From Ascidiella aspersa (taxonomy: Eukaryota): a stretch of DNA of 64,000 nucleotides. Shown in pieces: positions 38,470-63,292 of this stretch; position 1 is the stretch's first letter, and the number at the start of each line of letters is the position of its first letter. Position numbers and translations under genes: made by a program. The notes under the pieces were generated by a model. The model was not told the origin of the DNA. It saw nothing but the letters and a program-made list of their open reading frames with translations, and searched no databases. The stretch spans positions 31,000,001 to 31,064,000 of the forward strand of contig OZ004609.1 of NCBI GenBank assembly GCA_963924565.1, read 5' to 3'.

Positions 38470-39899
38470 ATGAATGGCAGCCAAAGAGAAATGTTGAATT
38501 CAACAGAACCATGGCGGAGGCATGTCGAACAAGTTTCTTGGGCCATCCTGACCACTGCCTCCTTTTATCTTGTCGTGGTTCTCGTAATATTCGAGGTAAA
38601 ACGAGAAAAAAAGCCACGGAATACCAAAAGACGAAAAGGCTGGACTTGGTGCTTCAGCGAGAACCCAATGTGCATTCTGGCAGCGATCTCCTCGCTACTC
38701 AGATGCGCTTCCTTGCAGATTGAGCTGAGTTTCGGTACGCAGAGCGAAGCGGCCTGTCAAGCATTCATGTTCCTTAACACTTCGCTGAACAACGTGAACC
38801 TTCTGGCGGTGTATTGTATGTTGTGGATCCGTCAACGCGCGCTCTACAATAATGTAACGCTAAAGTATCTGTTAACACCTTGCTACCGGCTTCTGAACGC
38901 CGCCGTGCTGGCCTGCTTCTTCGTCGCCATGGTTACGCTGACGTCACTCGTGTTCGCCGGCCTCAAGCTTGTGACGTCACCCATCGGGTGTGTATACGTC
39001 ACGGTGCACGAATCTCTGCGATACGCGATCACTGGCGCGTCATTCGTGAGTTTGGTGGCAGCACAGTGCTCGCTTCTGGCTCTTATGCTCTATCCACTCT
39101 TCAAACATTACGGGATCACCAGAAACTGTTGTGGCGAAGAAAGAACCAACAAAGACCGGAGCAGCAAGATACAGGTAAAACATTATTATTTGTCTAAAAT
39201 TAAAGTAAAGATTGTGAAAAACTTACAAAAAGAAAAATGTTGCAACTTTGTTTGCCCGAAAATATTGGCGAACTTGTTGCTATATTTGTTTCAAATCGAG
39301 AAAAATTCTAATTTTTTTTAGGTTCGTGCGATAATGTTGTAGTTATATTTGGGGCTCACTACAAATTGCCGCCGTAGATTAAATTATAAACTTTACGAAC
39401 GATTTATAATACATCTGACATCAATGAGAAATAATATTGCTTTATTACGTTTCATTGAGGTTCAGCTTTTGTCAAATTTGTCGGTGATTAAATTTGCGAG
39501 ATCACGTTAAGTTAGTGACCATAAAAGTTACTTAAGTCGGCACGTCAATTAAGTCGATTTTAAAGTAAATTGCAGTTCCTTATATACGCACAGAATGTCG
39601 TCACGCGTCTTTGTATCAGCACGTCGGTGTGCGTCATATCTGACGTCATACTGGGCCTGGGCGTGTCCGTGCTCGATTCGGTGGTCAACCGGCGTTCCAT
39701 CCTAACCTGGCTCGTCTACAACCTCAACATGTTCGTCAATACGGTGGCGCTAGTGAGTTCCTTCAAGGACTGGACCGCGCGACTGTTTCCATGGAAAAGC
39801 CAGCCGGTTTCGTCCTCTGACGCCACCGACGCTGGAGGCGCTTTGTGCAGCGTCGGTGGAACGTCATCGCGTCACGTGATGTTCAGCACGACATCTTAA
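38470..39899 (+). CDS. Divergent 7TM receptor, copy A (intact, 336 aa; exons 38470-39174, 39594-39899)
   Basis: Phase-0 intron cag|gtaaaa...cacag|aat. Seven hydrophobic segments, N-glycosylation sequons NGS/NST, Cys at the top of TM3 and in ECL2 (SPIGC), LWIRQRALY at the end of TM3, and YNLNMFVN...FKDWTARLFPW at TM7/helix 8. Confidence 0.85.
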
Positions 39900-40009
39900 G
39901 AACTTTATGGAAAACACTCAAACACTGCATTTGCAACTGATGAAAATAACGTGTTCATAAATTTATATGTTCACTTGGTCAAAATATTAAACGCGTCGAC
40001 ATTGAGAAC

Positions 40010-40416
40010 CAGTGTTGTAAACAAATAACTTTATTAAGACTTAAGTCCAAGTCAAGTCTTCTGTAAATTAACTTTAGTCAAGTATTTTAGAATAAATAAC
40101 GAGTCAAGTTCCAATCAGTTCATAATTAGAGCAAATCATTGTCATAAAAATTGCATGTTTAAATCCGATTATGAGAAATACCTCAACCTAAATGTACTGA
40201 AAACGCAACATGTAACAAGCAATTTATTTTATGTGCAAAAATCTGGAAAAATAACCAAATTTTATCAAAAAAAATCTTAATGAAAACACTTTATTTCATC
40301 CCAGTCATTTGTCTAACAAAATAAAGTCCATCCATTTGCCCAAAATACTTAAGTCAAGTTAAGTGTTTTATAAATTGTGGCTTACGCGCAGTCTGACTTA
40401 AGTCATTACAACATCG
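40010..40416. mobile_element. AAGTC-rich hAT-type MITE downstream of receptor A; paralogous copies at ~46830-47080, 50532-50970, 52311-52708 and (inverted) 63732-64000
   Basis: TIRs cagtgttgtaa / ttacaacatcg; 8-bp TSD ttgagaac / ttaagaac; the same flanks in the paralogous copies. Confidence 0.8.
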
Positions 40417-41460
40417 TTAAGAACAAATCCAAATAATGCTGGTTTAACGAAATACTCGAATCGAAACAATAAACACAACAAGCGAAAGAAACATTTCAAC
40501 GTAAGATTTATTTGTATTGGGAATGGTGATTGTCGTTTTAAAGTAGGAACAGCGTTTAACGCTATGTAATTTGATTAATTGGTTGAGACGATCGCAATAT
40601 CTTATTTTGACTGATGTAAGATAACGCAGGACTAGGAGATTAAGCTTTACCTGGTATTGAGTCTGACATGGCTGCGAAACATTGGTGTAAAAGTTGTAGC
40701 GATGCTAAACGTGAGGTGATAAACACTATTGGAACGGAAGAAAGCCTGATTGACGTGCACACGCCTTCTTATAGCTTTGTGTTTCGGGTGTTTTGGGGAG
40801 CAAGAAATTATGAGTGCGTTTTCAATCGATATATACGCAATACTGGGAAGTGACTGTCATATTTTGCCCAGAGCCTTCTAATGAGTGTTTTATCACTGTT
40901 TTACATACAAACACACGTCATCGACCCTGTACATATTTTAGACGCCAACTATTTACGCAAAGCAAAGGATGATAAAATGCATTGCTATAAACTACGTTGG
41001 CAAGTACTTTCATTGTAAAAAGTTCCGTGGCATGCGTGGCGCCCGTTGGCTGAGAAGATTCACACAAACAACCCACAAAGTCAAATACGATTTGCGTAAA
41101 ACGCGAAAACTTATTTTTGGGTAGTATATATAGGCATGTAATATGTATGGAGCATTGTCTCGTTTCCAGTTTGAAAAAGAGGCTGGGGCCGCATGATTAC
41201 CTTTGGCGAGCTGTAGGTTGACCTTTCCTGGTTTAAAGTAATTCGGTTCTGAGAACAGTCTTGATGTATCAGGAATGTTAGTTTGTCACTTCGCAAAGCG
41301 GCACGTCCTTTAATCACACGTACTTTTGTGCACTATTCTTAACGGGCTGCTTCCCAGTCAACTTCTTAAACGTGTTGCTCTTGCTTTAAGAAACAGCCCA
41401 ACAGTTTATAGTATTTCAAATATACAAATTTTTGATATCACAGATTTAATTGCTTTCAAA

Positions 41461-41820
41461 ATGAATGGCAGCAAATTAGCTTTATAAAATCTTAAATTCG
41501 ACTGAATTATGGCAAAGGTATGTTGAGCAAGAATCGTGGTATATCCTAACCACTGCTTCCTTTTATCTTGTTGTAATGTTCGAGGTAAAACGCGGAACGA
41601 AGCAACAAAACAATAAAAGACGGAAAGTCTGGACTTGGCACGGAAGCCCTGGGGGCGTTATTTTTGACTCTCACAAATTGAGCTGAATTTCGGAAAGCAG
41701 AGCTACGCGGCTTGTCATACATGTTCCTTTTAATTAACCGTTCGCTGAACCTGCTGGCGGTATAGTGCATGTTGTTGCAGTATTTCAAAATAATGTAACG
41801 CTTTGTATCTTCTCACGCTG
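41461..41820 (+). pseudogene. 7TM receptor copy B: decayed 5' part of exon 1
   Basis: atgaatggcagcaaa..., atcctaaccactgcttccttttatcttgt, ttcgaggtaaaacgcgga, attgagctga and ctgaacctgctggcggtatagtgcatgttg align to A/F with many deletions and stops. Confidence 0.85.
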
Positions 41821-43836
41821 TTTTTCATACAGCCCCAGTGACCAAAATTTACCACCCGCCAACAATATTACAGGTTCACCATATTTAATTTTAAATCACA
41901 AACATCTGATTTAAGAATATCTTCTTGAAAAACGTAATTATTGTTAACATATGTTGTAAACCAAACGATGTAAATTAAAGTCGCTTTTAGGGCGGTATAT
42001 TTCACGATTGGTCTGCTTAGTTAAAACTTATGATAAAAGTTTAACATAGCAGTTAATATTAATTTTGACTAACAAAGCAAAGCGTAATAAAAAACTCACT
42101 TTTGTTCACTACAGAGTTTTTTATTCAAAAGCCAAAGTACTAAACCTAAAGGTCGTCTATATTGAAAGTTAATATTTTTAGTATCCTAAATATTTTTAAG
42201 TCTTAAAATAAGGCACTATAGTTAGAGTGCCTGGGTGTTAAGCGCATTCATGTGAAACTTAAGCGATAAATTTAGGTTCTGTAGTTCCCCTAAAATTCCA
42301 CACTATTTAAAAAAAAAGCGTTACGCTTGATACGCAGCAACTATACCCCAAGGTTTACAAAGTGTTTCACATCGTTGTATCAAGCAGAATATACTTTTGC
42401 CTGCTGCTAGTTCTTGCAGTTGTTAATTTGTTTTTACCATGTTTAGAAATTAGGTTAAGAATGGCGTAAAACTAAACCGATATGTAAAATGAATTAATTA
42501 TCTTACTAACGGTCGCATTTTTTTATGAAATAAGCTCGGGTAGTTCTGTAGTTTAAAATGATTATATTAACTGTTTTAATTAAACGATTAAACATAATCA
42601 AGTAAAGACAATTTGGGAGTGTAACGATATATTTATTAAGTTTTATGAAACTAACAGTTTTTTTTTTCAACAAAATATAGCTAAGTTTTGCCCCAGACAA
42701 ACATTACTGTTAATAAACTACAAATCTTATTTTAGAAATTATGCTGCGGACCAAAAGAGTTAAACCGGCGAAACAAATTTAGCTCACCGGTGATAATTTG
42801 TTACACCCTGGTTTAAATTAATATCTTTGTTAAATAATTTAGTCGTAAATAATAAGAAAAAATATTTTTATGTTCTTTTTTGGGACAAAAGTAACAGTCC
42901 TAATAATAAGGCTCTTGCTTGATGTCACGTGTTACTTGCTTTTGCAGGCACGCTTAACGCGATAATTTTAGTTCCAGAAATTCTCCTGCAGCGCTAATAT
43001 CGGTTTCGAAAAAACGAGAAGGTCATTATTTTAGTATTTCAAGATAAGAAGCAATGTTTTTCCCGAGGTTTACAAAATGTATCGCATCGCTACATTTAAA
43101 GTTAAAATATACTTTGGCTTGTTGTTGTATAGTTAACAGTATAGTTGTTTGATTTTACCATTCTCCGGAATACAGTATAAAAAGAGTATAGAACTATACA
43201 GATTGCAAACTAAGTTAATTGCTACTACTAGGACTTGAGTGGTTTTCACATGGTTTTGTCGCAATTCTTTTTGAACAAGGTTAGTTAACAATGGTATTTG
43301 AAAAGGCTAAACTTATTGTTAAAGTCCGATGTTGCTTGACATTTTACTACGATATTGATGCCATATTTCTGAACATAAGGTAACACGATATGATCCAACC
43401 CCATTGGCGTCTATTAACTATGCCCAAAACAAGCAAAAGAGATCTAATTAAACCGTTTAAAGGATTTTTTTGTTATTTGGCCCAATAATTAACATGCTAT
43501 CTTAAATTTCTATATTAATTAACCCTGGTATCAGAGATGTACCGATACCATTGCTTGATTGGGCTTTGGACTCCCATACGACATTATCGTTCATTCTTGC
43601 TTATTATTCTGTATCAGGATTTAGTTATCAGTTTATTTGATTTAAAGGGTTGAACTTTCGCTGGAAAACGCATAGAAACTACAATTTTGGTCGCGATTTC
43701 AGTAAGCAGCTAATAACTTATTAGTTGGAAATTATTATCCTTTCATTGATGATGATTGCACCATATTATAGAAAAACTTTGTTATTATAAGGAAAGTTAA
43801 TCTTTGGCTAAAAGTTACATTAAGCTGTTTAGAAAA

Positions 43837-45533
43837 ATGAATAACAGCCAATTAGAAACGTTGAATTCAACAGAAACATGGCGAAGGTCTGTCGAGCAAG
43901 CCTCGTGGGGCGTACTGACAGCTGCTACTCTTTACCTTGTTGTGGTTCTCGTAATGTTCGAGGTAAAATGTGGAGAGAACCTGGTCAAGCAGGTGGTAAC
44001 TAAAAGACGAAAACAGTGGACTTCGAGTTTCGGCAAAAACCCGATGTGCATTCTGGCGGCTGTATTTTCGCTGCTCAGATGTGCTTCCTTACAAATTGAG
44101 CTGAGTTTTGGGACACAGAGCGACGCTGTCTGTCAGACATTCATGTTCCTGTATTATACCCTCAACAACCTGAACTTGCTGGCCGTGTACTGCATGTTGT
44201 GGACTAGACAAAGAAACCTTTACAAAGATGCCGTTCTTCGGTATCTCCTAACGCCTTGCTACCGATTTCTCAATGTCGCCGTCTTGGTCGGACTTATCGT
44301 TGCCATGGTTGTCCTTACGTCACTCGTATTCGTGGTACTCAAACTGGTGACGTCACCGTTTGGGTGCATGTACGTCACGGCGAATGGGTCTGTGCGCGTC
44401 GGATTCATGGGGGCATGCTATTGTGGGCTGGTGGCAATACAATGCTCACTTCTGGGCCTTATGCTTTATCCACTCTTCCGTCATTACGGGATCGCTAAGA
44501 GCTGTTGTTGCAGTAAAGGAGTCATTAAAGAACGTAGCAACAAAATACAGGTAAAACTTGAGGTTTTTTATTACGGTAAATTTGTTGCTAAAATTTCGAT
44601 TTCTGTAGTGGAAAAAAACTTCAGGGTTAAAATAAGCCCTCGAAATGTTTAAACCGAACTCAAACCAATCTGCCAAAAAATATAGTGAACGTTGGTGGAT
44701 TGTCTTACACCCAGCGGTAAACAACCAGAAACTGTCCGGTTCGGAAGATACCATGTTTCTTGAATTTATTTAAACTAGGATTTAATTGGGACAATTGCTT
44801 TTATGTCAATATTTAAAAGTTTTTAGGCGGTAGGAATACTATTCTACTATCACCTGGTTACATCAAATTTAGTTTTGTATTATTGGTTATTAAAATACCG
44901 GTCCTATCATTTAAGAATTATTAACTAAGTAAGGACAAGGTTGCGTCAAAAAATTAAAAATGCTTAAAAACTACAGTGCCAAATAAGGAAACGGCGTTTT
45001 ATAATCTTAAAAAAAGCTTTTCGACACAAATTACATAAAGCTTTTCTAAATCGGAACTATAGCTTTGCAGAAATGTATCAGCCGGTTGAAGAAGCTTTTT
45101 AAAGTTTCAAAATAACATGTTGCACTTTATGGGATAGCACAACGTAAAAATTTGACGCTGCATAAAACAAATAAATAGTATATTGTTATTTGCGCAGAAC
45201 GTCGTTACTCGTCTTTGCGTCAGCACGAGCGTGTGCGTCATATCTGACGTCATACTTGGCTTTGGTTCAGCGTTGTACGATTCTTACGCCGAACAGCACC
45301 GTCCAACACTCTCCTGGCTTCTCTACAACCTTAACATGATTGTCAACACGGTGGCGCTAGTGTGCACATTTCGTGATTGGACTGAGCGACTGTTTCCATG
45401 GAAACACCAGGCAAGCTCTGGTGCCATGGCAACGAATGTTATTGAGGCGGTTAAGGCCCCGAGCCCGAAAAATAAACCTGCTGGACTCAAACTTAAAGAC
45501 AGGGTTCCGAATACGATTTTTGACCTAGATTGA
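43837..45533 (+). CDS. Divergent 7TM receptor, copy C (intact, 349 aa; exons 43837-44550, 45198-45533)
   Basis: Same intron position (KIQ|NVV) and motifs LWTRQRNLY, SPFGC, LMLYPLFRHY, FRDWTERLFPW. Confidence 0.85.
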
Positions 45534-48500
45534 TCGCTTGATTATATTGAATTCATTAAAATTAAGGCAAGAAATGATAATTCAGTTTGAAACAAGTTCG
45601 CTGTAATATTAGTAGTTTGTTGCAATTGCAAGTTGTTGTTGTAAATTTGCGTTTTTAACACCCCTCCTGCAAAGTTCAGTTATGAATATTGTTGTACAGA
45701 ATATTTTATCGCTCGTTGTGTGTTGTTTTCGCTTTATTTTCACTATTGCGTTCTCACTTCCTTAACTTTTCTTGCCTCTTCATTTCTGCACCTTACGGTT
45801 CACCTGTTTATACCTTATCTTATTACGTTTGCTGTTGACACCTTTTCATGAAGTATTTTAGTCCTCACACTTTTTTCTTCCCGACCGCAGTTTGGTGAGT
45901 CATGTAAAATGAAGGTAGTCAGGTTGGAGTAGACTGGAATTGTTACAAAATTATCCAATGTTCACGTTCACATCCGTTTTTTAGTCGCTGGCCGCTTTTA
46001 TTGTTTTGTTTTAATGCCCCCTGTATCGAATACATCTATAAAATGAATCGTGTAGCGTTCAGGCATTTGACAGGCCGTTACGTATAGGGCTCCAAAACTA
46101 GTGTAACAATGTTAATATCGTTTATATCGACGTTCAAACCCTTTTCCCATCTTGAATTTATAGTAACTTTGACATCCCCGGAAGGGTTTTTCTTTTGCAA
46201 TTTGTTAGTTATAATGTTGGTTTATGTTTTTATTTCAATTTGTAAAATATAGAGTAGATTTAGAGTAGACCCCTCTTAGTATGAAATATTAAAAATTAAA
46301 GGTAAATTGTTGTTTTTCGAAAAATTTAACATAAATACATTCATATTGCCGTTATATTTTGTGCTAAACTTGTGTGCTGGCTTACTACAGTTTTTCTGGC
46401 ATTGTGAATTCAACCGGACTTGTACCGTGTCAATCTCAACTAATTAAAGAAGCCTTACTTAATGCTACTCCAACTGCAAAAATTATGTTTTCTTATTGCG
46501 TCATTTACAAATAACGAAAATCTGCATTCAGCTTAAGCGATAAATTTAGGCTCTGTAGTTCCCCTGCACTTCAACACTATTTTTATAAAAGCGTTACGCT
46601 TGACATTAGAGGATTTCAAGGTAAGCTGCCATTTTTAGCACAAGGTTTACAAAGTGATTCACATCATTGATTTAAGAAATATATTTTGTTATGCTGCTAT
46701 AGTTTCTACAGTTGTTGCTTGTTTTCATGAATTTAGAAATTCCGGTTAATAATAACATAAAACTAAACTGAGATGTAAAATGAATTAATTATTATCTTAC
46801 TCACGGCTGCAATGTTTGTTATGCAGCTCAACTCAAAAATATCAAACACGCACATAAACCAAGCAAATTATTTTATGTCCAAAAATTGCGATAAATAACC
46901 AAATCATATAAAAATAAACTAATAAAAACACTTCATTTCACGAAGTCATTTGTCCAACAGATTTACGAAAAGTCAGCTAATTTGTCCAAAAGACTTAAGT
47001 CAAGTCAAGTCATTTTGCACAATAGACTTAAGTCGAGTCAAGTCATTTAAGAAGCTTGACTTAAAGCCATTTAAACACCGTTAATAACTAATCGAAATAA
47101 TGCTGGTTTAACGAGATGCTCGAATCAAAACAATAAACACAGCAAGCGAAAGAAACCTTTCAACGTAAACTTTCTTATTTTGTACTGTTTTTGGTATTAT
47201 CGTTTGAAAGTTAAAACAGCGTTTAATCTGTGCGATTTGATGAATTGATTGCAACGATAGCGCTACCTCGTTTTGACTGATGTAATATAACGTAGGACTA
47301 CACGATATTGAGCGTGAGCTAGTATTAAGTCTGACTTGGCTGCGAAACTTTGTTGTAAAAGTTGCAACGATGCTAAACGTGAGACAATAAACACAACTGG
47401 AACTGAAGAAAGCCCAATTTAGGTGCATACGTCTGCTAAGCATTCTTTTCGCTTTGTGTTTCGGACGTTTTGGGGCGCAAGAAATTACGAGTGTGTTTTC
47501 AAATGATGCATAAACGATACGTGGAAGTGACTGTAATATTGTGTTAAGAGATAACTAATGGGTGTCATATCACTGTTTTGCACATATCCACATACATTAT
47601 CGACCCTGTATAAAATTTAGACACAAACTATTTACGCAAAAGATCATAAAATGCATTGCTATAAACTACGTTGGCAAGTACTTTTATTTTTGAGAATTCC
47701 ATAGTAAGCGTGGCGCCCTTTTGGTTGAGAAGATTTTCACAAACAACCCAGAAGGTCAAATACGATTTGCGTAAAGAGCCAAAACTTATTTTTGGGTAGT
47801 ATGGCCATATATGGGGCATTGCCTAGTGCCCAGTTTTAAAAAGGGGCTGCGGGCGGGATGATTTACGTTGCTAGTTTAAAGTAATTCGGTTCTGAGAGCA
47901 GTCGTATCCGGAAAGTTAATTTTTCACTTCGCAAAGCGGCAGTTCCCTTTTAATCACACGTACTTTTGTTCACTTTTTTAACGTGCTGCTGCCCAGTCAA
48001 ACATTTAAACGTGTTGCTTTGCCTAAACTTAAAGAAACAATCCAACAGTTTTTCGTATATAAAATATACAATTTTTGGACGATAAATTTAGGTTTCTGTA
48101 GTTCCCCTGTAATTCAACACTATTTTTAAAAAAGCGTTACGGTTGACATTATAGGATTTCAAGATACGCAGCAACTATATACCCCAAGGTTTACAAAGTG
48201 TTCCACATCATTGTTTTAACCAGGATATACTTTTGCCTGCTGCTAGTTCTTACAGTTCTTAATTTTCATGATTTTAGAAATTCAAGTTAAGTATAACATA
48301 AAACTAAGCGGTTTTATAAAATGAATTAATTTCCTTACTAACAGCCGGTGTATTTTATGCGATGAGCTGGCGTAGCAATGTAGTTTAATAAGATTATATT
48401 AACTTATACCTTATCTTATTACGTTTGCTGTTGACGTTTTCATGAAGTATTTTAGTCCTCACACTTTTTTCTCCTCGACTGCAGTTTGGTAAAACAAGTA

Positions 48501-50112
48501 AAAATGAAGGTTGTCAGGCTGGAGTACACTAGCATCGTAACTTCTATACGTTCACATCCGTTTTTTAGTCGCTGGCCGCTTGCATTATTCTACGCTTTTA
48601 TTGTTTTGTTTTAAAGCTATCTTTTTTATAATTTTTTTAATTGTAAAATATAGAATAGACCATCCGTATTAGTATTGTGGTAAATATTTTTTTAAATAAT
48701 TTAACATGTATATAATTTTGCCGCTATAATTTTATACTTACCTTATGTGCTGGCTTACTCCAGTTTTTCGGGCATTGTAAATTCAAGCGGACTGTAGCGT
48801 GTCGTGCTAAGAGGCGCGAATATTTCTGCCAATTGGTTCGCAAAATAAAATCAGAGATCTGGTAAACTTAAGCTGCATGGATATGATTTTCTAGCGCCAT
48901 TGCTAGGTCAGACGAATCTCAAAAAATATTAGCTTATTAAAGAAGCCCTGCTTAATGCTACTCCAACTTTAAAATTATGTTTTTCCTTGGTGCGACATTT
49001 GCATATATCGAAATTCAGAAAAAATAACAATTTTTATAGATGTAGACCCAAAGTTTCGAACTTACCCCTTAAGCAGTTGTTCATTTGAACGGTCGCATTG
49101 GGGACTTACGAAATTTTGCCCCAGTGCTTACTTGAAACTGTGGTGGCCTTTGTTATGGGTCGCCTTTGGCAAAATTGCAACATGAGAAACAAAAACCCAA
49201 CCTGCCAAAACCAGTCACACCGAAAACAAATTCAAACGTTTAAACTTATTGACGACATGTATCGTTAACCATAATTAAACGACAAAACGACAAATTAAAA
49301 AAAGTGTGAAAAATGGAAATTCGCAGTAGCTGACCTATTCCAGGTTCTTATGCAGACGCCTAAAACGATCAACAACACATAATGTAATACAAAGATTTCT
49401 AGCTGAAAATTTATCCAAGTTCTTGCGCTTAAAACGATTAAAACAAATCGAACCAAAGCATTGGCGTTGTCGAACCCGATTTGCTCTTGATTCGAAACAT
49501 GACCAAAATATTTATTTCATCATGCAGAAAAATAACTAGTTTTATGGGTTTTGTTTTCCACTCAGTTCTAGTGACTTTACAAAATTTTCCACCTGCCAAC
49601 AATATCACAGGTTTCGTAATTTATAATTTTTTAAACCCTTTTTTTACTAATTTAAGAATACGTATATCGTACTCGAAAAACGTAAATAACAAGCACTATA
49701 CTGTAAACCCAAATGGTGTAAAATTTCCCAATTGATGATTTAAGGCGGTGTATTTTACAATTGATCTGCTCTGTAAACTTTTAAGGATAAAAAATATTTA
49801 ATATAGCAGTTTTTATCAATTTTGACTAAATCAAAACGTAAAAAACATAAATTCATTTTTGTTCACTAGTGTTTTTTCATTCATAAGGCTCTGCAGTTCC
49901 CCTGTAATTCAACACTATTTTAAAAAAGCGTTACGCATGATATTATAGGATTTGAAGATACGTAGCTTAAATGAGCCATACAAACGATTTATAAAATATC
50001 TGACCTCAAAAAGAAATAATATTGTTTTATTATACAAGATTTGCATTCAGGTTCAGCTTTTGTAAAATTTGTCGGTGATTTAGTTTGCGCGATCATGTTA
50101 AGTTACGCATAG

Positions 50113-50412
50113 AACGTCGTCACTCGTGTCTGTATCAGCACGTCGGTGTGCGTCATATCTGGCGTCATTCTGGGTCTGGGCGTGTCCGTTTTCGATTCCG
50201 TGGTCAATCGGCGTTCAATCCTAACCTGGCTCGTCTACAACCTCAACATAATCGTCATAGGCGGCGCTAGTGAGCTCCTTCAAGGACTCCCATGGAAACG
50301 CCAGACGGCTTTGTCCTCTGACGTCACCGGCAACGTCACCGACGCTGGAGGCGCCTTGAGCAGCGCCGGTGCAACGTCATCGCGTCACGTGATGTTCAGC
50401 ACGACGTCTTAA
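50113..50412 (+). pseudogene. 7TM receptor copy D: orphan exon 2 (A-like), no exon 1
   Basis: tag|aacgtcgtcactcgt... closely matches 39594-39899. Two deletions scramble the end of TM7/helix 8, but the frame is restored at PWKRQ. Confidence 0.8.
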
Positions 50413-51873
50413 GAACTAAAAATAAACAAAAAAATAAAAATAACGTGCTGGTCAATCCCCGCAAGTTTGCTCTGTTGTTGCTGCTTATATTTTAACCTGA
50501 TTAAAACGTTGAAAGTTTCGGCATTGAGATCCAGTGTCGTAAGCAAGTTTTTTTCAAATAACTTAAGTCTCAGTGAAGTCATTTGTAAATTAACTTTAGT
50601 CAATTATTTTAGAATAAATAACGAGTCAAGTCCCAATCAAGTCATAATTAGAGCAAGTCCTTGTCATAAAAATTGCATGTTTAAGTCCGACTATGAGAAA
50701 TACCTCAACCTAAAAGTACTGAAAACGCAACATGTAACAAGCAATTTATTTTATGTGCAAAAATCTGGAAAAATAACCAAATTTTATCAAAAAAATCTTA
50801 ATGAAAACACTTAATTTCATCCCAGTCATTTGTCAAACAAAATAAAGTCAAGTCATTTGTCGAAAAGACTTAAGTCAAGTCGAGTTATTTTGCCCAAAAA
50901 ACTCAAGTCAAGTTAAGTGCTTTATAAATTGTGGCTTACGCGCAGTCTGACTTAAGTCATTACAACATCGTTAAGAACTAATCCAAATAATGCCGGTTTA
51001 ACGAAATACTCGAATCGAAACAATAAACACAACAAGCGAAAGAAACATTTCAACGTAAACTTTATTTGTATTGGAAATGGTGATTGTCGTTTTAAAGTAG
51101 GAACAGCGTTTAACTCTTTGTAATTGATTAATTGGTTGAGACGATCGTAATAACTGATTTTGACTGATGTAAGATAACGTAGGACTATAGGAGATTAAGC
51201 TTTACCTGAGAACTACTTCGTCTATTTATTTCAGAGATATAACAGTGGAAGAAGCTTCATGGGTTTATAAAAAACATTTTGCACTATTTTGACGTTACGT
51301 GTGTTTTTACATTCACATTTTTAATCGTTTCAGTGATTTAAATATAGATTGTATTCATGTTTAACTAAACTTACCTTAATACATTTCTTGTACAGAACAA
51401 CAAAGTGTGGTGTCGTTCTATTTTGAGCTACTAATTTATTGTGAACGAGGCCCGTAAGCCACACGGCTAAAAAGTTTGCCAAAGAAAGTATACCGGAGTG
51501 TAACCTATTGCGAGATTCGTCAAACGCGCAGGCTCAAGTTAGTTTGTAAAACGAGAGGGTTTGGCAGGTGACGTAATACGCATGGTTTCCGTAAACTTGA
51601 AAGGCAACGCAAACAAACGGTTTTAAAGGGAAACATAGATTAAATAACAAAACTTTACAAACGATTTATATTACGTTACTTCTGACCCCAATGAGAAATA
51701 GTTTTACTTTATTATACAAGACTATGCATTCAGGTTGAGCTTTTGCAAATTTGTCGGTGATTTAATTTGCAAGATCACGTTAAGTTAGTAATCCCCAAAA
51801 TTATTTGAGACGACTCGTCAAAAATGAGGTCGAATTTGAAGAAAGTAAATCGCATTTCCTTATTTACGCATAG

Positions 51874-52168
51874 AATGTCGTCACGCGTCTTTGTATCAGC
51901 ACGTCTGTCGTCGGTGTGCGTCATATCTGACGTCATACTGGGCCTGAGCGTGTCCGTTTTCGATTCCGTGGTCAAACGACGTTCAATCCTAACCTGTCTC
52001 GTCAACACGGTGGCGCTAATGAGCTCCTTCGAGGACTGGACCGCGGGAATGTTCCCATGGAGACGCCAGACGGCCTTGTCCTCTGACGTCACCAATGCTG
52101 GAGGCGCCTCGAGCAATAGTGTTGGTGGAGCGTCATCACGTCATGTGATATTTAGCACGACATCTTGA
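51874..52168 (+). pseudogene. 7TM receptor copy E: orphan exon 2 (A-like), frameshifted
   Basis: 5-nt insertion near 51905 (acgtctgtcgtcggtg) and a 21-nt deletion removing the YNLNMFV segment; no exon 1 upstream. Confidence 0.8.
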
Positions 52169-54196
52169 GAACTCTATAAAAAACATTTGAAACACTGCTT
52201 CTACAATTGATGAAAATAACGTGTTCGTCTGTTCCTCGCATGTCAGCTCAGCTTTTGATGTTTTTACATTTTCAATTTGTCAAAACATTAAAAGATTCGG
52301 CATTAAGAACAAGTGTTGTAAGCAAATCACTTTGAAATGTCCAAGTCAAGCCTTCTTCACTAAATAATAAGACAAGTCATATTTAGAGCAAGTCAACCCC
52401 TTGTCATAAAATTACATGTTCCCGTTCGATTATGAGCAATACCTCAACTTAAAAATACTAAAAACGCAACCCTAATTATTTGATGCTAATTATTTTTTTA
52501 TGTGTAAAACAAAAGAAAATACCGCTAACCAAATTTTATAAAAGAAAAGCTTAATAAAAACACTTCATTTCATCCAAGTCATTTGTCTAACAAACTTAAA
52601 TCAAGTCAAGTCATTTTGCCCAAAAGACTTAAGTCAAGTTAGGTGATTTATAAATAATGGCTTACGCGCAGTTAAGTCAAGTCATTACCTGAAGTCATTA
52701 CAACACCGTTGAGAACTAATCCAAATAATGCTAGATGCAACGAAATGCTCGAATCGAAACAAAAAACACAGCAAGCGAAAAAAATTGTTTTTAGGTTGTA
52801 ACAGCGTTTAATGCTGTGCAGCTTGATAAATTGATTGCGACTACCGCGGTACCTCATTTTGACTGATGTAAGATAACGTAGGACTAACGACTACAGGTGA
52901 TTGAACGTTAGCTGGTATTGAGCCTGACCTGGCTGCGAGACATTGGTGTAAAAGTTCTAGTGCTAAACGTGAGGTGATACACACTAAGGGAACGGAAGAG
53001 AGTCTGATTTATGTGCATACACCTGCTTAGCATTCTTTTTTTTTACACACACACACACAAACACACACTCACACACACACGTTATCGACCCCTGCACAAA
53101 AGTGTACATGTTTTGGACGCTGTTAAGTTAATCTTGCCATACAGCAGAACAGGCTACGATAATTACCTGCCCGTAGTGTGGAGCGTAATTTTAGAATAAG
53201 CAGCGATTTTGGGGCCAATGGCCACTGGTTTGTTTAATGCAGGGGTGAACAAACTTTCCCAGTTCCGTGCTTAAATAAAATAAAAAATTTGGACCGCACT
53301 AAACTTCCAGAAATAATTTTTGATAAGAGTTATTAAAACATAAGGTGTGCAGTATGATATAATACGTCTAAATCAGAGACAATTCAGGATTATTATCCAG
53401 TTAGAAAAGTCTAATTATGTAAACGAAGGCAAGGTCTTGGCGTGAAGTTAAAATGCGTTTGGAGTTGAAAAATGCGTTTGGAAAAAAAAAGTGTGAGGTC
53501 GATTAGCCAACAGATTTATTGCTGTACAGATGTCTGGTAAAAAGTTTAGAACATGCATAAAAACAGTGCTTTTATTTTGTTAAAATCGTTGGTTTAACAT
53601 GGAGTGGTCATTATAATGGTCATCGTGTAAATACGACATTATGTACATAATTTCATAAACGATATTATCCGCATAAATTGCATGTTTAAACAGTTTGAGT
53701 GCACGAGGACCCATAATCACAATGAGAAGACTGTAACATAATTACTTTAATTTAAATATTTATTCGTTTTTTGTTGTAATTTAAAAAGGGCCAATATATA
53801 ATCTATATGTTATGTCTCAGTTCTCGATGGTATGTCAACCCATAAAGTATTCACGCAAAGCACGATAAAATGCATCGCTATAAACAACGTTGGTAAATAA
53901 TTTTATTGTTGATAGTTCCATAGTAGGCGTGGCGCCCTTTGGCTGAGACGATTCACACAAACAACCCAGAAAGCCAATAAGATTTGCGTAAAGCGAAAAA
54001 CATTTTTTTGGTAGTATAGCCAAAATATATGGGGCATTGCCTCGTGCAAAGTTTGAAAAGGAGGCGGCTGATTGGATGATTAACGTTGGTCAGCCGTAGC
54101 TTGCCCTTTTCGGGTTTAAATTAAGTCGGTTAAGGGCAGTCTAGATGTATCAGGAAAATTCATTTGTCACTTCATAAAGCGGCTGGTCCATTAAAC

Positions 54197-54509
54197 CAGT
54201 GGTTCCTAACCTTTTTCCTTGCTGCACCCCTTTCAAATAACCAACCGGTTCTCGCTTCCCTTTCAGATTACCAACTAATTCTCGCACCTTCTTCTAGAAT
54301 TGCTTAAAGAACAAAACCTTTGTAATTTTTATTCCAAAAACGGATAACACAATAACACACTACCAAAATGTGATTTATTTTACATTTACTTGAGCAAAGA
54401 AATAAATTACAGTAATTAATTTTCTGTGTCTGATGTGGCATCCCCACACCCCCTTGGGACAGTTTTTGCACCCATTGGGTTTGCGGGCACCCCTGGCTGA
54501 CAAACCCTG
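54197..54509. mobile_element. hAT/Charlie-like MITE inserted in the upstream region of receptor F
   Basis: Left end cagtggttcctaacc; flanks cattaaac / atttaaac. Paralogous upstream blocks at ~41310 and ~47950 lack the insertion. Confidence 0.7.
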
Positions 54510-54683
54510 ATTTAAACCACGCGTACTATTGTGCACTTTTTCAACTTGCGTTGCCCGCAGTCAAACACTAAAACCTGCCGTGAAAGAAATTAGGATTAAT
54601 GTTGTATTTCTTAAATATAAACAGATCAACAGTTGTTAATATATTGCAAATACTAGTTTTGAAAAGTCCAGGTTTGTTTCGAA

Positions 54684-56593
54684 ATGAACGGCAGCAAAAT
54701 TGCGTTGAATTCGACTGCATCATGGCTAAGGTCTGTCGAGCAAGCTACGTGGGCCATCCTGACAACTGCCTCCCTTTATCTTGTCGTGGTTCTCGTAATG
54801 TTTGAGGTAAAACGCGGAAAGAAGCAACAAAATAATAAAAAACGGAACGGCTGGACTTCGTGTTTCGGCAAAAACCCTATGTGCATTCTGGCGGCGTTAT
54901 TTTCGTTGCTCAAAAACGCCTCCTTACAAATTGAGCTGAGTCTTGGGACACAGAGCGACGTCGTCTGTCAGACATTCAAGTGCCTGTTTTATACCCTGAA
55001 CAACCTGAACTTGCTTGCGGTGTACTGCATGTTGTGGACTCGACAAAGAAACATTTACAAACATGCCGTATTTCGGAACCTTCTGACGCCTAACTATCGA
55101 AGTTTCAATGTCGGCGTCTTGGTTGGGCTTATCGTTGGCACGGCTGTCTCGACGTTACTCGTAATCGTGGTACTCAAGATGGCGACGTCACCGTTTGGGT
55201 GCATATTCGTCACGATGCAAGGGGTTGAGATCAACCCGAACAACTGGCTTTATTTTGTCGGTTCATTCTGGATTCAATGCTTACTTTTGGGCCTCATGCT
55301 TTATCCACTCTTCCGTCATTACGGGATTGCTAAGAGCTGTTGTTGCAGTAAAGGAATCATTAAAGACCGTAGCAACAAAATACAGGTACGAAAAGGTATT
55401 TTTAGTAAAGGTAAATTTGTTTCTAGAATTTCGATTTCTGTAGTGGGATAAACCTTATGGTAGAAATAGGCCCAAGGAATTTTTAAAGCATATTCCATCC
55501 AATCTGGCAAAAAATATACTAAAAGTTGCAGGATTGCATTACATCCAGTGATAAAAGTAAGTCAAAAAAGGATTTGTAATGGATGTTCTGTAATACATTA
55601 GGTACGGCGTACCGGTAAAATACATCTTTAAATAATTTCTAAAAAAATCTTTTAAAAAAATTTTTTTTACCTAGCCACCGTTTTTTTTTGAATTTATTTA
55701 AATTGAGATTTAATTTCGAGATTTGTTGCCTGCATCAAACAACAATCTTAACTTTCCTAAAAATTTATTCTCCTTTATGGCATGGTATGGTGTAACCTTT
55801 TGACGTCGTTTTTTAAAGATTTCATTGCGTTCCGACAGGAAAATTATTCTACTCTAACCGCTGATTACATAAAATTTCATTTGTATTTTATGTTATTAAA
55901 ATACCCGTCCTTTCATTTGTGGATTAGTTACTGAGTAAGGACAAGGTTCCGTCAAAAATTTATTAAAAATACCAAAAATAAATATAAGTGACAAATAAGA
56001 AAACGGCTGATGAAAATCGTATTTTGACATAAATTACTTGAGCATTTTTAAAGGAGAACTACAGCGTCTATTTCTTTTCAGAAACCTTGGGTTTATAGAA
56101 ACATTTTGCACTATTTTGACATTACGCGTGATTTTACATTCACAATTTTAATCGTTTCAATGATTGCCAGTTTCAATGACAGCAACTGCCTATAGGTTTC
56201 CCGCTTTTGGTACAGTATACCGTTAAAAATTGACCACGGCTGAAACAAACAATCTGGATATTTTTCTTAATGCAGAACCTCGTTACGCGCCTCTGCGTCT
56301 GCGCATGCGTGTGCGTCATATCTGACTTCATACTGGGCTTTGAATCTTCGTTTCCCACAAGGCCATCACTCTTTTGGCTTGCCCACAACCTCAACATGAT
56401 CGTCAACACAGTAGCGACAGTGTGCACATTTCGTGATTGGACTGAGCGATTGTTTCCATGGAAACACCAGACAAGCTCTGGTGCCATGGCAACGAATGTT
56501 ACCAAGACGGCTAAGAACACAAACCTAAAAAATAAACATGCTGGACATACACTAAAAGACACGGTTGCGAATACAACGAATTTTAACCTATAG
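54684..56593 (+). CDS. Divergent 7TM receptor, copy F (intact, 339 aa; exons 54684-55385, 56276-56593)
   Basis: Same phase-0 intron (KIQ|NLV); motifs LWTRQRNIY, SPFGC, HNLNMIVN, FRDWTERLFPW. Confidence 0.85.
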
Positions 56594-58125
56594 ACTGGTC
56601 GCTTTCTTATATTAAATTTATCAAAATCAGAGCAGGAAAAGGGAAACAAACAAGTTCGTTGTAATTTTACTTTGTTGCATATAAGTCTGGTCCTAAAATT
56701 TTTAAAACCCCTACAAAGTTTAGTTACAAAAATTATTGCACACAATATTTTATTGTTTGTTGTGTATGTTTTTGCCTTATTTTTCACTATTGCGTTGTCA
56801 ATCACTTTCTGCTCTTCACCTGTTTATACCTTATCTCATTACGTTTGCTGTTGACACCTTCTTTTAAAGTATTTTAGTCCTCACACTTTTTTCTCCTCGA
56901 CCGTAGTTTGGTGAAACATGTAAGATGAAGGTGGTCAGGTTGGAGTAGACTGGAATCGTGATCAAATTATACAACTTCTATACGTTCACATCCGTTTTTA
57001 GTCGCTGGCCGCTTTTATATTATTTCACGCTTTTATTGTTTTGTTTCAATGCTATCTTTTCATTACTTTTTTTTAATTTGTAAAGTATAGATCTATCGTA
57101 TTAGTATTGCGGTAAATATTTTTCTCTAAATAGTTTAACATGTATATTATTTTGCCGAAATAATTTTGTGCTTACCTTGTGTGTTGTATTACTACAGTTT
57201 TGCGGGCATTGTAAATTCAAGCGGACTGTACCGTGTCGTTTGGTTCGCAAAATAAAATCAGAGATCAGATAAACTTAAGCTGGGTGTGATTTTCTGGTCG
57301 CATTGCTAGGTCAGACGAGTCTCAATAAATCTTAGCAAATTAAAGAAGTCCTGCTTTATGCTACTCCAACTGTGAAATTATGTTTTTGATTAGTGCGACA
57401 TTTGCATATCCAAATTTAGTTCAAAATACAAGTTTTAAAGATGTAGCCCCCAAAATGTCGAACCTCCCCCTTAAGCAGTTGTTCTTTTGAACGGTCACAT
57501 TAGGGACTTACGAACTTTTTCCCCAGTGCTTACTGGTAACTGTAGTGGCCTTTGCTATGGATCGCCTTTGTCATGCAGACAATATGAGAAACAAAAACTC
57601 AACCAGCCACACGGAAAACAAATAGAAACGTTAAACTTCTTAACTACATGCATCGTTGACCATAGCTAAAGGACGAATTGAAAATAAACTGTAAATTTAT
57701 CAAAGACAATAAAAAATGCAAATTCGCACTAGCTGACCTGTTCCAGGTTCTTACGCAAACCCTAAAACGATCAAGAACAAATAATGTTAAACAAAAACTT
57801 TTAGCTGAAAAGTATCTTAGTTCTTGCGCTTAGCGTTAACAAATCGAATAAAGCAATAAAGTTGTCGCCCTACCCCATTTGCTTTCGCATTCGAAGCATG
57901 TTTTACGCAGAAAAACAACAATAGTTTTATTGAATTTATTTTCCACTCAGTTTCTGTGACTTTACAAAATTTGCCCACCGTCAACAATATTCCAGGTTCG
58001 ACATTTAACATTTTTTAAACATATTAAACTAATTTAAGAATATGTATGGCCCACTTAAAAAACGTCAACACAACCACTATACTGTAAACACAAATTGTGT
58101 GAAATTTTTAAATTCATGATATAAG

Positions 58126-59610
58126 CAGGGCCGGATTAAGGTTTTCATGGGCCTGGGGCTGTATGGTAGTCAGAGGCCTATCGGTCAATTTCCATTTTGT
58201 TCATTGCTTCAACCACAATTCATAGGCGTAGCCAGGGGGGCGCAGGGGCCATGTCCCCCCTAAATCTATAAATATTTTATTCCTAATAATTTGTTTTTTC
58301 TATATATTAATGCAGTTTTACTACTTTTAGTCAGTTTTTGCTCTTTGAATGGTTTGTGAGTATTGCGTTAACACTAAGTCCGCTACTGCTCGAAACGGTT
58401 TGCTAGAATTGTTATTTGTGTTCGTTACGGCAGTTAATACACTGGTAAAAGCTAAACAAATAAGTTCAAACTTTTTGGCGCCCCGAAAAAATTTTTCGGC
58501 TGGCTACGCCACTACCACAATTACCTTAAAATAACATTGCTTTATTCACTTATCAAACAGATCCAATTAACGCGTTTTTCCAGCTGTTTATAAAGTAATC
58601 GCTGTATATTTCTCCCAAATCTCGTTTTTTATACAAAAGTAGAGCTAAGGAATGCAACCTACTTAGACTAACGCATTTAATTCTTTGCTGTTTTAAGGAC
58701 TGAAAATAGGCGTTTGCCTGAACAGTTAGTAATCATCAGACACAGATACATTCTTAAAACAACAGATAGCTCATTTTCATTAATAAATCTAAACGTTTTA
58801 GCTTCTTTGCTACTTTTGACGTTAAAATGGTGGTATTTTAGCGCTGCAAAAAATGAATCATCTCTTCAGGTTTTGATTTTCCAGTTCATCTGGGTGATAC
58901 TAAAGCAAGGTTTCAACGCTTTCTCTAATGGTTTAGACGTGGTATCTAAAATCAGTCAACTTTAATACTACATCACATTCTTAAATGTTTTTTGTAATTT
59001 CTTTGAACGTATAGGCTACCAATGATTGCTATACCTTTTGCTGGCACAGCATCGCAATTATTATTCGAAACATTCACGAAATTTAGATATTGTGACAATC
59101 TGGCTGAGCAAATGTACTATCTTTAAACAAGTTAATGTAGCTCGTTGTGATTTGTTTGAGCATATAGTCTTCTCATAGTAGCTTCATTTTGTAAAGTAAC
59201 AAACACGCACTGACGTCAAAAGCTAGTCGTCTTATGAAAGCCTCAAAATAAATATGATGGATATTTCTTTAAACCAGGGGTCGGCAACCTAGGGCCCGCG
59301 GACCGCATCTTGCCCGACCATGAAAATCATCCGGTCCGCGACCTGCTTTTACAAGCTGGACACAAGGTCATCCAAATTTGAACTAACTATGTTTAACATA
59401 ATTAAAAGCCACACGCTTTATAAAATTGTTTTATTACGGCCTTACTGAGTTTGCTGCCTGGCACCAGTGGCGATATCACTAGATTTTAGCTTTACAGTTA
59501 TTTTACAAAGATAACGTCGGTTGGTCCTATTAAATTGTTAGTGATGGGCCTATTTTTTGTGGTGGGCCTGGGGCTGCAGCCCCCTCAGCCCCCGCCTTAA
59601 TCCGCCCCTG
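58126..59610 (-). mobile_element. Decayed hAT transposon with a transposase C-terminal remnant and nested MITEs
   Basis: TIRs cagggccggattaagg / ccttaatccgcccctg; TSD gatataag / aatataag; empty paralogous site at ~49737. Minus strand ~58775-58630 reads ELSVVLRMYLCLMITNCSGKRLFSVLKTAKN*...RLHSLALL, resembling the hAT dimerisation domain. Confidence 0.8.
58221..58514. mobile_element. hAT MITE (CATAGGCGTAGCCAG family) nested in the larger hAT
   Basis: TIRs cataggcgtagccag / ctggctacgccacta with a perfect TSD ccacaatt. Confidence 0.88.
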
Positions 59611-60642
59611 AATATAAGGCGTTATATTTTACGATTGATCTGCTCAGTAAACACTAGATGATAAAATAAATATTTAATATAGCTGTTTTTATCAGTTTAA
59701 ACTAAATCAAAACGTTAAAAACATAAATTCATTTTTGTTCACTATATAGTGTTTTTTATTCATAAGCCAAAGTACGAAACCTAAAAGTCGTCTATAAAGA
59801 AAGTAATTTCTTTGGTCAATAACAACAGGGTCAATAATAAATAATTTTATATATTATATATATTCTATTTCAGGTCATAGTTTTCATAATTTTAGTAATC
59901 TAGGTAAATCATAGCATACAACTAAACTGAGATGTAAAATGAATTATTTATTACCTTACTAACAGCTGTAATGTTTTTATGCAGCTCAACTTAAAAATAC
60001 CAAACACGCAACATAAACCAAGCAAATTATTTTATGTGCAAAAATTACCATGAATACCCAAATCATATAAAAAATCTAATAAAACACGTTTCACCAAGTC
60101 ATTTGTCCAAAATACTTAAGTCGAGTCAAGTCATTTGAAAATCTTGACTTAAAGTCATGATAGAATTAAAACAGAACAATAAAAGCGTAAAATAATAAAA
60201 GAGGCCAGCGACTAAAAACAGATGTAAACGTAGATGTTGTATAATTTGGTCACGGAGCTAGTCTTCTCCAACCTGACTACCTACATCTTACTTGTTTGAA
60301 CAAACTGCAGTCGAGGAGAAAAAAATGTGAGGACTAAAATAATTGAAAAGGTGTCAACAGCAAACGTAATAAGACAAGTATAAACAGGTGAAACGTGAAG
60401 TGCAGAAATGAAGAAGCAAGAAAAGTTAAATGATTGACAACGCAATAGTTAAAATAAGGCGAAAATAACAAACAGCAAACGATAGAAATATTCTGTGCAA
60501 GAGCTTTTATAACTGAACTTTGCAGGGGTTTGAAAAATTTAAGGACCAGAAGTATATGCAACAAAGTAATATTACAACGAACTTGTTTGTTTATCATTTC
60601 CTGATCTGGTTTTAACAAATTTAATATCAGAAAGTGGCCAGT

Positions 60643-62101
60643 CTATAGGTTAAAACTCGTTGTATTCGCAACCGTGTCTTTTAGTTGATGTCCAGCATGT
60701 TTATTTTTCGTGTTTGGGACCTCAACCGTCTTGATAACATTCGTTGCCATGGCACCAAAGGTTGTCTGGTGTTTCCATGGAAACAATCGCTCAGTCCAAT
60801 CACGAAATGTGCATACTATTGCTATTGTGTTGACGATCATGTCCAAATTAAGGAGAAGCCAGAAGAGACGGAGCTGTTGAACGGAAGAACCGTACAGCGC
60901 TGAACCAAGGCTCAGTATGACGTCAGATATGAGTCACACGCTCGTGCAGACGCAGAGACGCGTAACAACGTTCTGCGCAAATAAAAATATACTAATTATT
61001 TGTTTCATGCAGGATCAAATTTTTACGGTATGCTTGCCAAAATGTAGAACCTATAGGCAGTTGGTTTCATTGAAACTGGAAATCACTGAAACGATTAAAA
61101 TTGTGAATGTAAAACCACATATAATATCAAAATAGTGCAAAATGTTTTATAAACCCATAAAGCTTCTTCCACTGTTACATTTCTGAAAGAAATGAACGCT
61201 GTAGTTCTCCTTTGGAAAAGGTTCAAGTCAAGTCACCACTGGATGTAACACAATACGCCACAGTTCAAAACATTATTCGCCGGATAAGATCGAATTCAGT
61301 TTAAACATTCCAAAGGGCTTAATTTAAACCCTGAATTGATTTACACTACCGAAATAGAAATTTTTCGTAAGATATCATTTTTTACCTGTATTTTGCTGCT
61401 ACGGTCTTTAATGGTTCCTTTACTGCAACAACAGCTCTTAGCGATCCCGTAATGACGGAAGAGTGGATAAAGCATAAGGCCCAGAAGAGAGCATTGAGGA
61501 GCCACCACTAAACCGACAAAAGAAGACACGCTGATCGCGTAGAGTTGAACTCTGTGCGTCGTGTCGTACATGCACCCAAACGGTGACGTCATAAGTTTGA
61601 TTATCACAAACAAGAGTGACGTAAGGGCAACCATGGCAACGATAAGCCCAACCAAGACGGCGACATTGAGAAATCGGTAACAAGGCGTTAGGAGGTACCG
61701 AAGAACAGCAGTTTTGTAAAGGTTTCTTTGTCTAGTCCACAACATGCAGTACACCGCAAGCAAGTTCAGGTTGTTTAGGGTAAAATACAGGCACTTGAAT
61801 GTTTGACAGACAGCGTCGCTCTGTGTCCCAAGACTCAGCTCAATTTTTAAGGAAGCACATCTCAGCAGCGAAAACAACGCCACCAGAATGCACATAGGGT
61901 TTTTGCCGAAACACGAAGTCCATTGTTTCCATTTTTTAGTGCCACCTGCTTACCCAGGTTCTTTCCGCGTTTTACCTCAAACATTCCTAGAACCACAACG
62001 AGATAAAATGATGCAGCGGTCAGTACGGCCCAGGCCGCTTGCTCGAGAGACTTTCGCCATGGTTCTGTTGAATTCAACGTTTCTAACTGGCTGTTGTTCA
62101 T
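60643..62101 (-). pseudogene. 7TM receptor copy G: full length and inverted, with a frameshift and a nonsense codon (exons 62101-61386, 60972-60643)
   Basis: 1-nt deletion at ~61940 relative to C (gtggc-actaaa vs gtggtaactaaa) and TGC>TGA at 60936-60934; splice sites intact. Confidence 0.85.
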
Positions 62102-63025: not shown

Positions 63026-63292
63026 NNNNNNNNNNNNNNNNNNNNNNNNNNNNNNNNNNNNNNNNNNNNNNNNNNNNNNNNNNNNNNNNNNNNNNNNNNN
63101 NNNNNNNNNNNNNNNNNNNNNNNNNNNNNNNNNNNNNNNNNNNNNNNNNNNNNNNNNNNNNNNNNNNNNNNNNNNNNNNNNNNNNNNNNNNNNNNNNNNN
63201 NNNNNNNNNNNNNNNNNNNNNNNNNNNNNNNNNNNNNNNNNNNNNNNNNNNNNNNNNNNNNNNNNNNNNNNNNNNNNNNNNNNNNNNNNNNN
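63026..63292. other. Assembly gap (N run) within the duplicated region
   Basis: Run of n characters. Confidence 0.99.

Follow-up and report, generated by a model that had tools for sequence, protein, structure and literature searches.

Intron-bearing genes of an orphan seven-transmembrane family of tunicates form a tandem array in Ascidiella aspersa: candidates for the sensing of chemical cues

Introduction

Ascidians respond to chemical cues at settlement, in feeding and at spawning, and to our knowledge they have no receptor genes of the odorant, vomeronasal, TAAR or bitter type. Which proteins might perceive such cues is the question raised by a gene cluster of the ascidian Ascidiella aspersa, located on contig OZ004609.1 of assembly GCA_963924565.1 within a stretch of 64,000 nucleotides (positions 31,000,001 to 31,064,000 of the forward strand) that is called the window throughout. 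Seven related loci for proteins with seven transmembrane helices (7TM) lie between positions 38470 and 62101 of the window. The answer reached here, held with reasonable though far from complete confidence, is that the cluster is a tandem array of an intron-bearing subfamily of an orphan 7TM family so far known from tunicates, whose products would be surface receptors with the sensing of chemical cues as their likeliest job. A preliminary description of the window had already suggested chemoreceptors; the idea is reasonable, but it had been published in outline for a gene of Ciona (Johnson et al. 2020, EvoDevo 11:15, PMC7397655).

Results and Discussion

Seven loci, three of them intact

The cluster was delimited by running the exon translations against the 64-kb window by tblastn and by listing the open reading frames (ORFs). 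The searches returned exactly seven paralogous loci in 38470-62101, in agreement with the seven loci in 24 kb that had been announced, namely three intact two-exon genes and four relics. They are given below with window coordinates, where TM denotes a transmembrane helix, ICL and ECL an intracellular and an extracellular loop, and the E values refer to the family profile described in the next section.

38470..39174, plus strand: gene A exon 1, intact, 235 aa with the N-terminus, TM1-TM5 and the first part of ICL3; donor ATACAG/GTAAAA; profile match E 1.2e-38
39594..39899, plus strand: gene A exon 2, 101 aa plus stop with TM6, TM7, helix 8 and tail; acceptor CACAG/AATGTC; gene A product 336 aa
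41486..41774, plus strand: locus B, pseudogene, exon-1 pieces of TM1-TM3 across three frames, stops present
43837..44550, plus strand: gene C exon 1, intact, 238 aa; profile match E 3.4e-37
45198..45533, plus strand: gene C exon 2, 111 aa plus stop; gene C product 349 aa
50113..50412, plus strand: locus D, solitary exon-2 relic, gene A-like, acceptor and part of the intron retained, TM7/helix-8 stretch scrambled (NLNIIVIGGASELLQGLPWK)
51874..52168, plus strand: locus E, solitary exon-2 relic, gene A-like, frameshift after NVVTRLCISTSV, YNLNMxV stretch of TM7 gone
54684..55385, plus strand: gene F exon 1, intact, 234 aa; profile match E 2.6e-34
56276..56593, plus strand: gene F exon 2, 105 aa plus stop; gene F product 339 aa
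61386..62101, minus strand: locus G exon 1, pseudogene, frameshift in the part coding for ICL1
60643..60972, minus strand: locus G exon 2, in-frame stop within TM6 (directly after NVVTRLCVCTSV)

The three products, of 336, 349 and 339 aa, fall in the range of 336-349 aa given in the preliminary description. All copies share the same splice sites (donor ATACAG/GTA, acceptor YAG/AAYGT, phase 0), so placed that ...KIQ ends exon 1 and N(V/L)VTRLC opens exon 2. No exon 1 was found upstream of locus D, and ECL3 of gene F is shorter than that of the other copies. The window includes two runs of N, at 6578-6677 (100 bases) and 63026-63292 (267 bases); the second lies just past locus G, so that the continuity of the array is not fully visible there. 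Searches, trees and substitution rates were all computed exon by exon.

Membership in the KH.C3.516 family

The relative that gives these genes a biological context is Ciona KH.C3.516, an orphan 7TM protein with tandem paralogues and with no BLAST matches outside tunicates, whose expression is specific to axial columnar cells in the papillae of the larva, and whose fusion to green fluorescent protein (GFP) is enriched at the exposed apical tips of those cells (PMC7397655). Johnson et al. proposed the KH.C3.516 family as tunicate chemoreceptors and counted a transmitter of nearby neurons among the ligands that KH.C3.516 might have (PMC7397655). KH.C3.516 was found mentioned in the literature only in that paper, in its 2024 successor and in the preprint of the successor, and a systematic description of the family was not found.

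The sequences P0007 and P0163 carry three 11-residue peptides of the published KH.C3.516 sequence; P0007 matches the family profile at E 1e-67, and exon 1 of gene A matches P0163 in BLASTP at E 8e-13 with 25% identity. Hence, the window genes belong to the KH.C3.516 family, and their products are homologous to KH.C3.516 on the evidence of sequence. The family consensus comprises a TM1 Tyr, a TM3 with Cys at its top and LWxRQxxFY at its bottom, GC in ECL2, QxxLLGLxLYP in TM5 with an invariant Pro, RLxxCxxxCVxxD in TM6 and NxxxN in TM7 followed by SFxDWxxRLxPF. From the TM3 Cys onwards every one of these elements is shared by KH.C3.516 and the window proteins, which also agree in length, in their short N-terminus and in the arrangement of their genes in tandem arrays. 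They differ in gene structure, a phase-0 intron interrupting ICL3 in the window subfamily while the KH.C3.516-type genes found here lack introns, and in phylogenetic position, the KH.C3.516 clade being well separated from the window subfamily.

The extent of the family was estimated in the 308.6-Mb assembly (75 contigs). Exon 1 of gene A had at least 78 matches, the distant ones (24-38% identity) being single ORFs that span 310-400 aa and are grouped in tandem on contigs 1-9. A family profile built from 21 intronless paralogues of the same genome (alignment A2) gave at least 123 genomic matches at E<=1e-5, mostly single ORFs of 300-400 aa in arrays, a lower bound given that all scored candidates matched; the exon 1s of the window match it at E 1e-29 to 1e-38. 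The biggest intronless arrays are located at 21.87-22.04 Mb of contig 5 (about 20 loci) and at 24.33-24.37 and 25.11-25.16 Mb of contig 6 (more than 10 loci), some loci with single stops, and the contig 6 arrays are the closest relatives of KH.C3.516 in the genome. The Pfam model 7tm_1 found 57 genomic matches at E<=1e-10, none of them within the family arrays.

Public proteins were searched with the same profile. Among 1.84 billion cluster representatives, 1263 matched at E<=1e-3 and 364 at E<=1e-30. From the 30 clusters that were looked up, 14 had species names, and all 14 were ascidian (Ciona intestinalis, Clavelina lepadiformis, Styela clava) and described as 'uncharacterized'; the restriction to tunicates applies to these named clusters, the other representatives being nameless and the weak tail of the 1263 matches left uninspected. 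The orphan, apparently lineage-specific character assigned earlier to the family is supported by the Pfam searches, which gave no consistent match, and by the 14 named clusters, its tunicate-only scope reaching as far as the latter. Among the automatic UniRef names, 'GPCR family 1 profile domain-containing' occurs several times and 'family 3' once; since the labels alternate among P0013, P0005, P0157 and P0180, such PROSITE-derived names are unreliable for this family. ESM Atlas gave only chordate clusters of the family itself and no named relatives. A word-index protein search with alignment A3 recovered only P0119 and P0080, both already among the representatives, and with gene A exon 1 it returned no protein; this type of index is ill-suited to such hydrophobic sequences and its blanks carry no weight.

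An intron-bearing subfamily with an orthologue in Clavelina

The closest public protein is CAK8674458.1 of Clavelina (P0157, 359 aa), accompanied by a shorter model, P0080. It is about 50% identical over both exons and runs contiguously across the exon junction. In a maximum-likelihood tree, P0157 and the six intact Ascidiella genes (three in the window and three beyond it) form a clade with 100/100 support and a long stem, while the KH.C3.516-like P0163 falls in a separate clade alongside the intronless arrays of contig 6. The six genes are nearer to each other than to the Clavelina protein, which indicates a species-specific expansion.

An intron was seen here in no other subfamily. The genes nearest to the window subfamily (L013 and L014 in the same genome, P0002 in Ciona) are single ORFs, and therefore the intron was likely gained in ICL3 of this subfamily.

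Turnover and constraint in the array

The array measures about 64 kb, from which 24 kb lie within the window and 40 kb run on outside it, to about 31.102 Mb. The outer part contains three further intact two-exon copies (L004, L003, L002), a broken gene present in two copies about 20.4 kb apart, and one fragment. The cluster gains and loses copies, and four of the window copies are decaying. The tandem, pseudogene-rich arrangement, pointed out earlier for the 24-kb cluster, has indeed the look of chemoreceptor arrays. The cluster itself is one minor branch within a family that counts over 120 loci.

Two structural features of the region were also recorded. A segmental duplication of about 20.4 kb is found just past the window, with copies at G000:C3:31065049-31071762 (L010/L012/L016/L004) and 31085459-31092185 (L009/L011/L015/L003). 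Each copy holds one intact and one broken gene of the subfamily, the latter with two TAA stops, and the intact genes of the two copies are dS 0.03-0.06 apart (dS, synonymous divergence). A dispersed copy of the subfamily lies on contig 8 (G000:C8:22312084-22314052, L007/L027), with its exon 1 split across two frames; this copy keeps the intron and was hence copied as DNA, not by retroposition.

With so many broken loci, it could be argued that the whole cluster is a decaying, non-functional remnant. Such a reading could invoke that four of the seven window loci are broken and that the ratio of non-synonymous to synonymous divergence (dN/dS) is raised in gene F, about 0.5-0.77 against its closest relatives. 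The Nei-Gojobori estimates for the six intact genes gave dN/dS of 0.17-0.51 for exon 1 and 0.15-0.77 for exon 2, with dS up to about 1 or more. Gene F is the fastest-evolving one: the dN/dS of its exon 1 is about 0.5 against gene C and the copies at 31.07 and 31.09 Mb, and 0.27-0.31 against gene A and the 31.10 Mb copy. The six intact genes, inside and outside the window, are under purifying selection, and the ratios show that they are real constrained genes and not chance ORFs. A remnant is extremely improbable, since six complete two-exon genes have kept their reading frames open and their splice sites conserved, with dN/dS far under 1, and since Clavelina retains an orthologue.

Topology and conserved motifs

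By hydropathy, genes C and F each have seven segments, five of them encoded by exon 1 and the remaining two by exon 2. In gene A the count was four and two, TM3 remaining below the threshold, so that the seven hydrophobic segments previously ascribed to the three proteins were recovered in C and F but not in A. Lys and Arg residues number 2-3 in the N-terminus, 7-9 in ICL1, 0-1 in ECL1, 5 in ICL2, 1-2 in ECL2, 6-7 in ICL3, 1-2 in ECL3 and 4-9 in the tail, a distribution that follows the positive-inside rule and thereby indicates an extracellular N-terminus and a cytoplasmic C-terminus (N-out, C-in). The short glycosylated N-terminus described earlier corresponds to the 23-24 residues preceding TM1, where two N-x-S/T sequons lie.

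The motifs attributed to the window proteins were all read in the translations: LW(I/T)RQRxxY, the GC of ECL2, NLNMxVN and, in the helix-8 region, F(K/R)DWTxRLFPW. The DRY, NPxxY and CWxP motifs are replaced by LWxRQR, NLNMxVN and CVISD, and none of the three is present in the family consensus. TM7 reads (W)L(V/L)YNLNM(F/I)VNTVA(L/T)V and contains no Lys. The proposed TM3/ECL2 Cys pair corresponds to Cys112 and Cys190 in P0157 numbering, conserved in at least 90% of the members. When the six intact paralogues are compared, variable positions are concentrated at both ends of the protein (N-terminus and tail), in the loops ICL1, ECL2 and ECL3 and at the top of TM5. Almost fixed are TM2 and TM3, TM5 in its cytoplasmic half, and TM6, TM7 and helix 8. 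A Cys cluster, K(S/W)CCCSKG, was observed in ICL3 at the end of exon 1 in genes C and F and in L002-L004, gene A having NCCGEE instead; it may be a palmitoylation site, in an unusual position.

Predicted fold and receptor class

The fold was approached through two relatives. The AlphaFold2 model of L013, the nearest intronless paralogue, had a predicted local distance difference test score (pLDDT) of 80.7, and that of P0157, which stood in for a spliced window product and was predicted from an alignment of 138 rows, had pLDDT 86.2 and a predicted template-modelling score (pTM) of 0.84. Both models display seven long helices, a beta-hairpin in ECL2 holding the conserved Cys, and a short helix 8. 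P0157, and by homology the window proteins, are thus predicted to form an N-out, C-in seven-helix bundle with a TM3-ECL2 Cys pair and an amphipathic helix 8. The top Foldseek matches of the models in the PDB are nearly all G-protein-coupled receptors (GPCRs) of class A, at E about 1e-4 and with TM-scores of 0.4-0.6, and the predicted fold scores equally well against other seven-helix proteins. A GPCR is suggested by the disulfide pair, by the hairpin in ECL2, by helix 8 and by two residues, the Pro of TM5 and the Arg at the TM3 end.

The likeness to class A GPCRs covers the predicted N-out bundle with its TM3-ECL2 disulfide pair, its ECL2 hairpin and its helix 8, two single residues (Pro in TM5, Arg close to the cytoplasmic end of TM3) and the best Foldseek matches, whereas DRY, NPxxY, CWxP, N1.50 and D2.50 are missing from the family. 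None of the 138 members scanned reached the gathering score of 7tm_1 (PF00001), and the 18 paralogues from the same genome gave one hit below the cut-off, at E 0.012. Membership in class A has no support in sequence, and the GPCR reading of the preliminary description is therefore carried by a GPCR-like predicted fold that other seven-helix proteins match equally well.

Among the closest known systems are the bitter receptors of vertebrates (TAS2R, class T), along with further divergent families of chemoreceptor GPCRs. The serpentine families of nematodes are also alike, being large, lineage-specific, tandem 7TM families missed by general GPCR models. The ESM Atlas label 'Serpentine receptor class gamma' is automatic and belongs to a chordate cluster, and the nematode Pfam families gave no consistent match, with one Srd hit at E 0.003 among the 138 members. 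The 7tm_4 (odorant receptor) and TAS2R models had no match in the scanned members and do not figure in the list of 25 families obtained for the 138 members, and they had no match in this genome, in searches made without a positive control. That ascidians lack vertebrate-type odorant receptors, as had been stated, is compatible with this negative result and with the Ciona survey, in which no olfactory or TAS2 receptors are listed (Kamesh et al. 2008, PMC2396169).

Seven helices do not by themselves imply coupling to G proteins, and the window proteins could instead act as channels gated by a ligand, as enzymes, or in transport or trafficking like the TMEM87/GOST type. The equal Foldseek scores against other seven-helix proteins would suit this alternative, which is nevertheless unlikely: the Cys pair, the ECL2 hairpin, the TM5 Pro, the TM3-end Arg and the amphipathic helix 8 are GPCR hallmarks, and Foldseek puts GPCRs, nearly all of class A, first. 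Three specific candidates of this kind were ruled out, a channel like the insect odorant receptors by the N-out, C-in topology, which is the reverse of theirs, a microbial (type I) rhodopsin or other retinal protein by the absence of a Lys in TM7, and a GOST or TMEM87-GPR107 type by the 23-24 residues before TM1, which leave no GOLD-type or other large luminal domain.

Proposed function

If the GPCR reading is correct, the window proteins would be cell-surface receptors binding their ligand in the extracellular half of the bundle, a location proposed because the paralogues differ most at ECL2, the top of TM5 and ECL3. The signal would pass to the cytoplasmic face, where an invariant W-x-R-Q closing TM3, a conserved Arg and a conserved Asp in TM6, N-x-x-x-N of TM7 and F-x-D-W-x-x-R-L of helix 8 may stand in for DRY, CWxP and NPxxY, and the likeliest transducer would be a heterotrimeric G protein. 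The likeliest job would be the detection of external or contact chemical cues by differently tuned paralogues. The family displays the large lineage-specific tandem expansion and the frequent pseudogenes expected of a chemoreceptor repertoire.

The same architecture would serve GPCRs for endogenous ligands such as peptides, transmitters or lipids, in which case the family would represent receptors of internal signalling that expanded specifically in tunicates. Foldseek gives as best matches class A receptors for peptides and lipids (among others those for opioids, neurotensin, formyl peptides and ghrelin), most pairs show fairly strong purifying selection, and the neuronal transmitter named by Johnson et al. 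as a possible KH.C3.516 ligand would be of this kind. More than 120 tandem loci, with many pseudogenes and species-specific expansions, would be unusual for hormone or transmitter receptors; such a pattern is typical for external or fast-changing ligands. Orthology among ascidian species is sparse, and the KH.C3.516-GFP fusion is found at cell tips facing outside. Endogenous ligands are therefore rather unlikely.

Rapid turnover in tandem, many pseudogenes and variation concentrated in the extracellular loops would also be in keeping with recognition receptors for self and non-self, gametes or microbes, that is, with an immune-type or allorecognition use of the 7TM scaffold. Ascidians possess elaborate self-recognition systems, but the self-recognition genes known to us in these animals encode other types of protein, and the only expression datum for the family comes from larval papilla cells, which renders a recognition function very unlikely.

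Several observations weigh against receptors for chemical cues. Pfam gave no consistent family in the window exons, in the 18 paralogues from the same genome or in the 138 family members; the profile found in PDB sequences only a chance match at E 0.21; and the probability from hhalign, run against 11 receptors of class A from this genome, was 2.9%. The sole hhalign alignment, local to TM7 and helix 8, is suggestive without being significant: N7.49 is paired with the second Asn of NxxxN, and F8.50 with the Trp of FxDW. The structural models are those of relatives, L013 and the Clavelina protein P0157, and not of the window proteins. The sole studied relative, KH.C3.516, is only 25% identical, and it is expressed in contractile, non-neuronal cells, with an endogenous transmitter also considered as its ligand (PMC7397655). 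A chemosensory role is the most likely one by analogy, the likeness being drawn at the level of the family and from one distant Ciona member.

A wider proposal can be put forward tentatively, namely that the family is possibly the largest 7TM family of ascidians, with at least 123 loci here compared with 57 matches of 7tm_1, a separate class-level GPCR lineage tied to the GRAFS classes by no sequence model, and the chemoreceptor repertoire of tunicates, with the window subfamily as a separately tuned branch of it. As a whole this proposal remains doubtful.

Neighbouring sequences

Two other coding sequences of the window were identified. An uninterrupted ORF of 725 aa on the minus strand at 30566-32743 resembles glycyl-tRNA synthetase (GARS), as identified from sequence; it is uncommon in an animal for this gene to be without introns, here beside the receptor array. 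An ORF piece located upstream of the cluster, on the minus strand at 17927-18304, contains DGDFLLRSS and resembles an SH2-domain exon of a multi-exon gene.

Conclusions

The central idea, that this family may comprise chemoreceptors, is not new, and the present additions are made at the level of sequence and predicted fold. The new elements are a divergent subfamily that carries an intron and has a Clavelina orthologue, a description of the motifs and of the predicted fold, a lower bound for the size of the family and evidence of selection. The family had been touched on only briefly before, in one paper on papilla cells. A seven-helix family of more than 100 genes without a database name is an obvious candidate to fill the chemoreceptor gap of ascidians, and concrete genes are now available for in situ, single-cell and de-orphanisation work.

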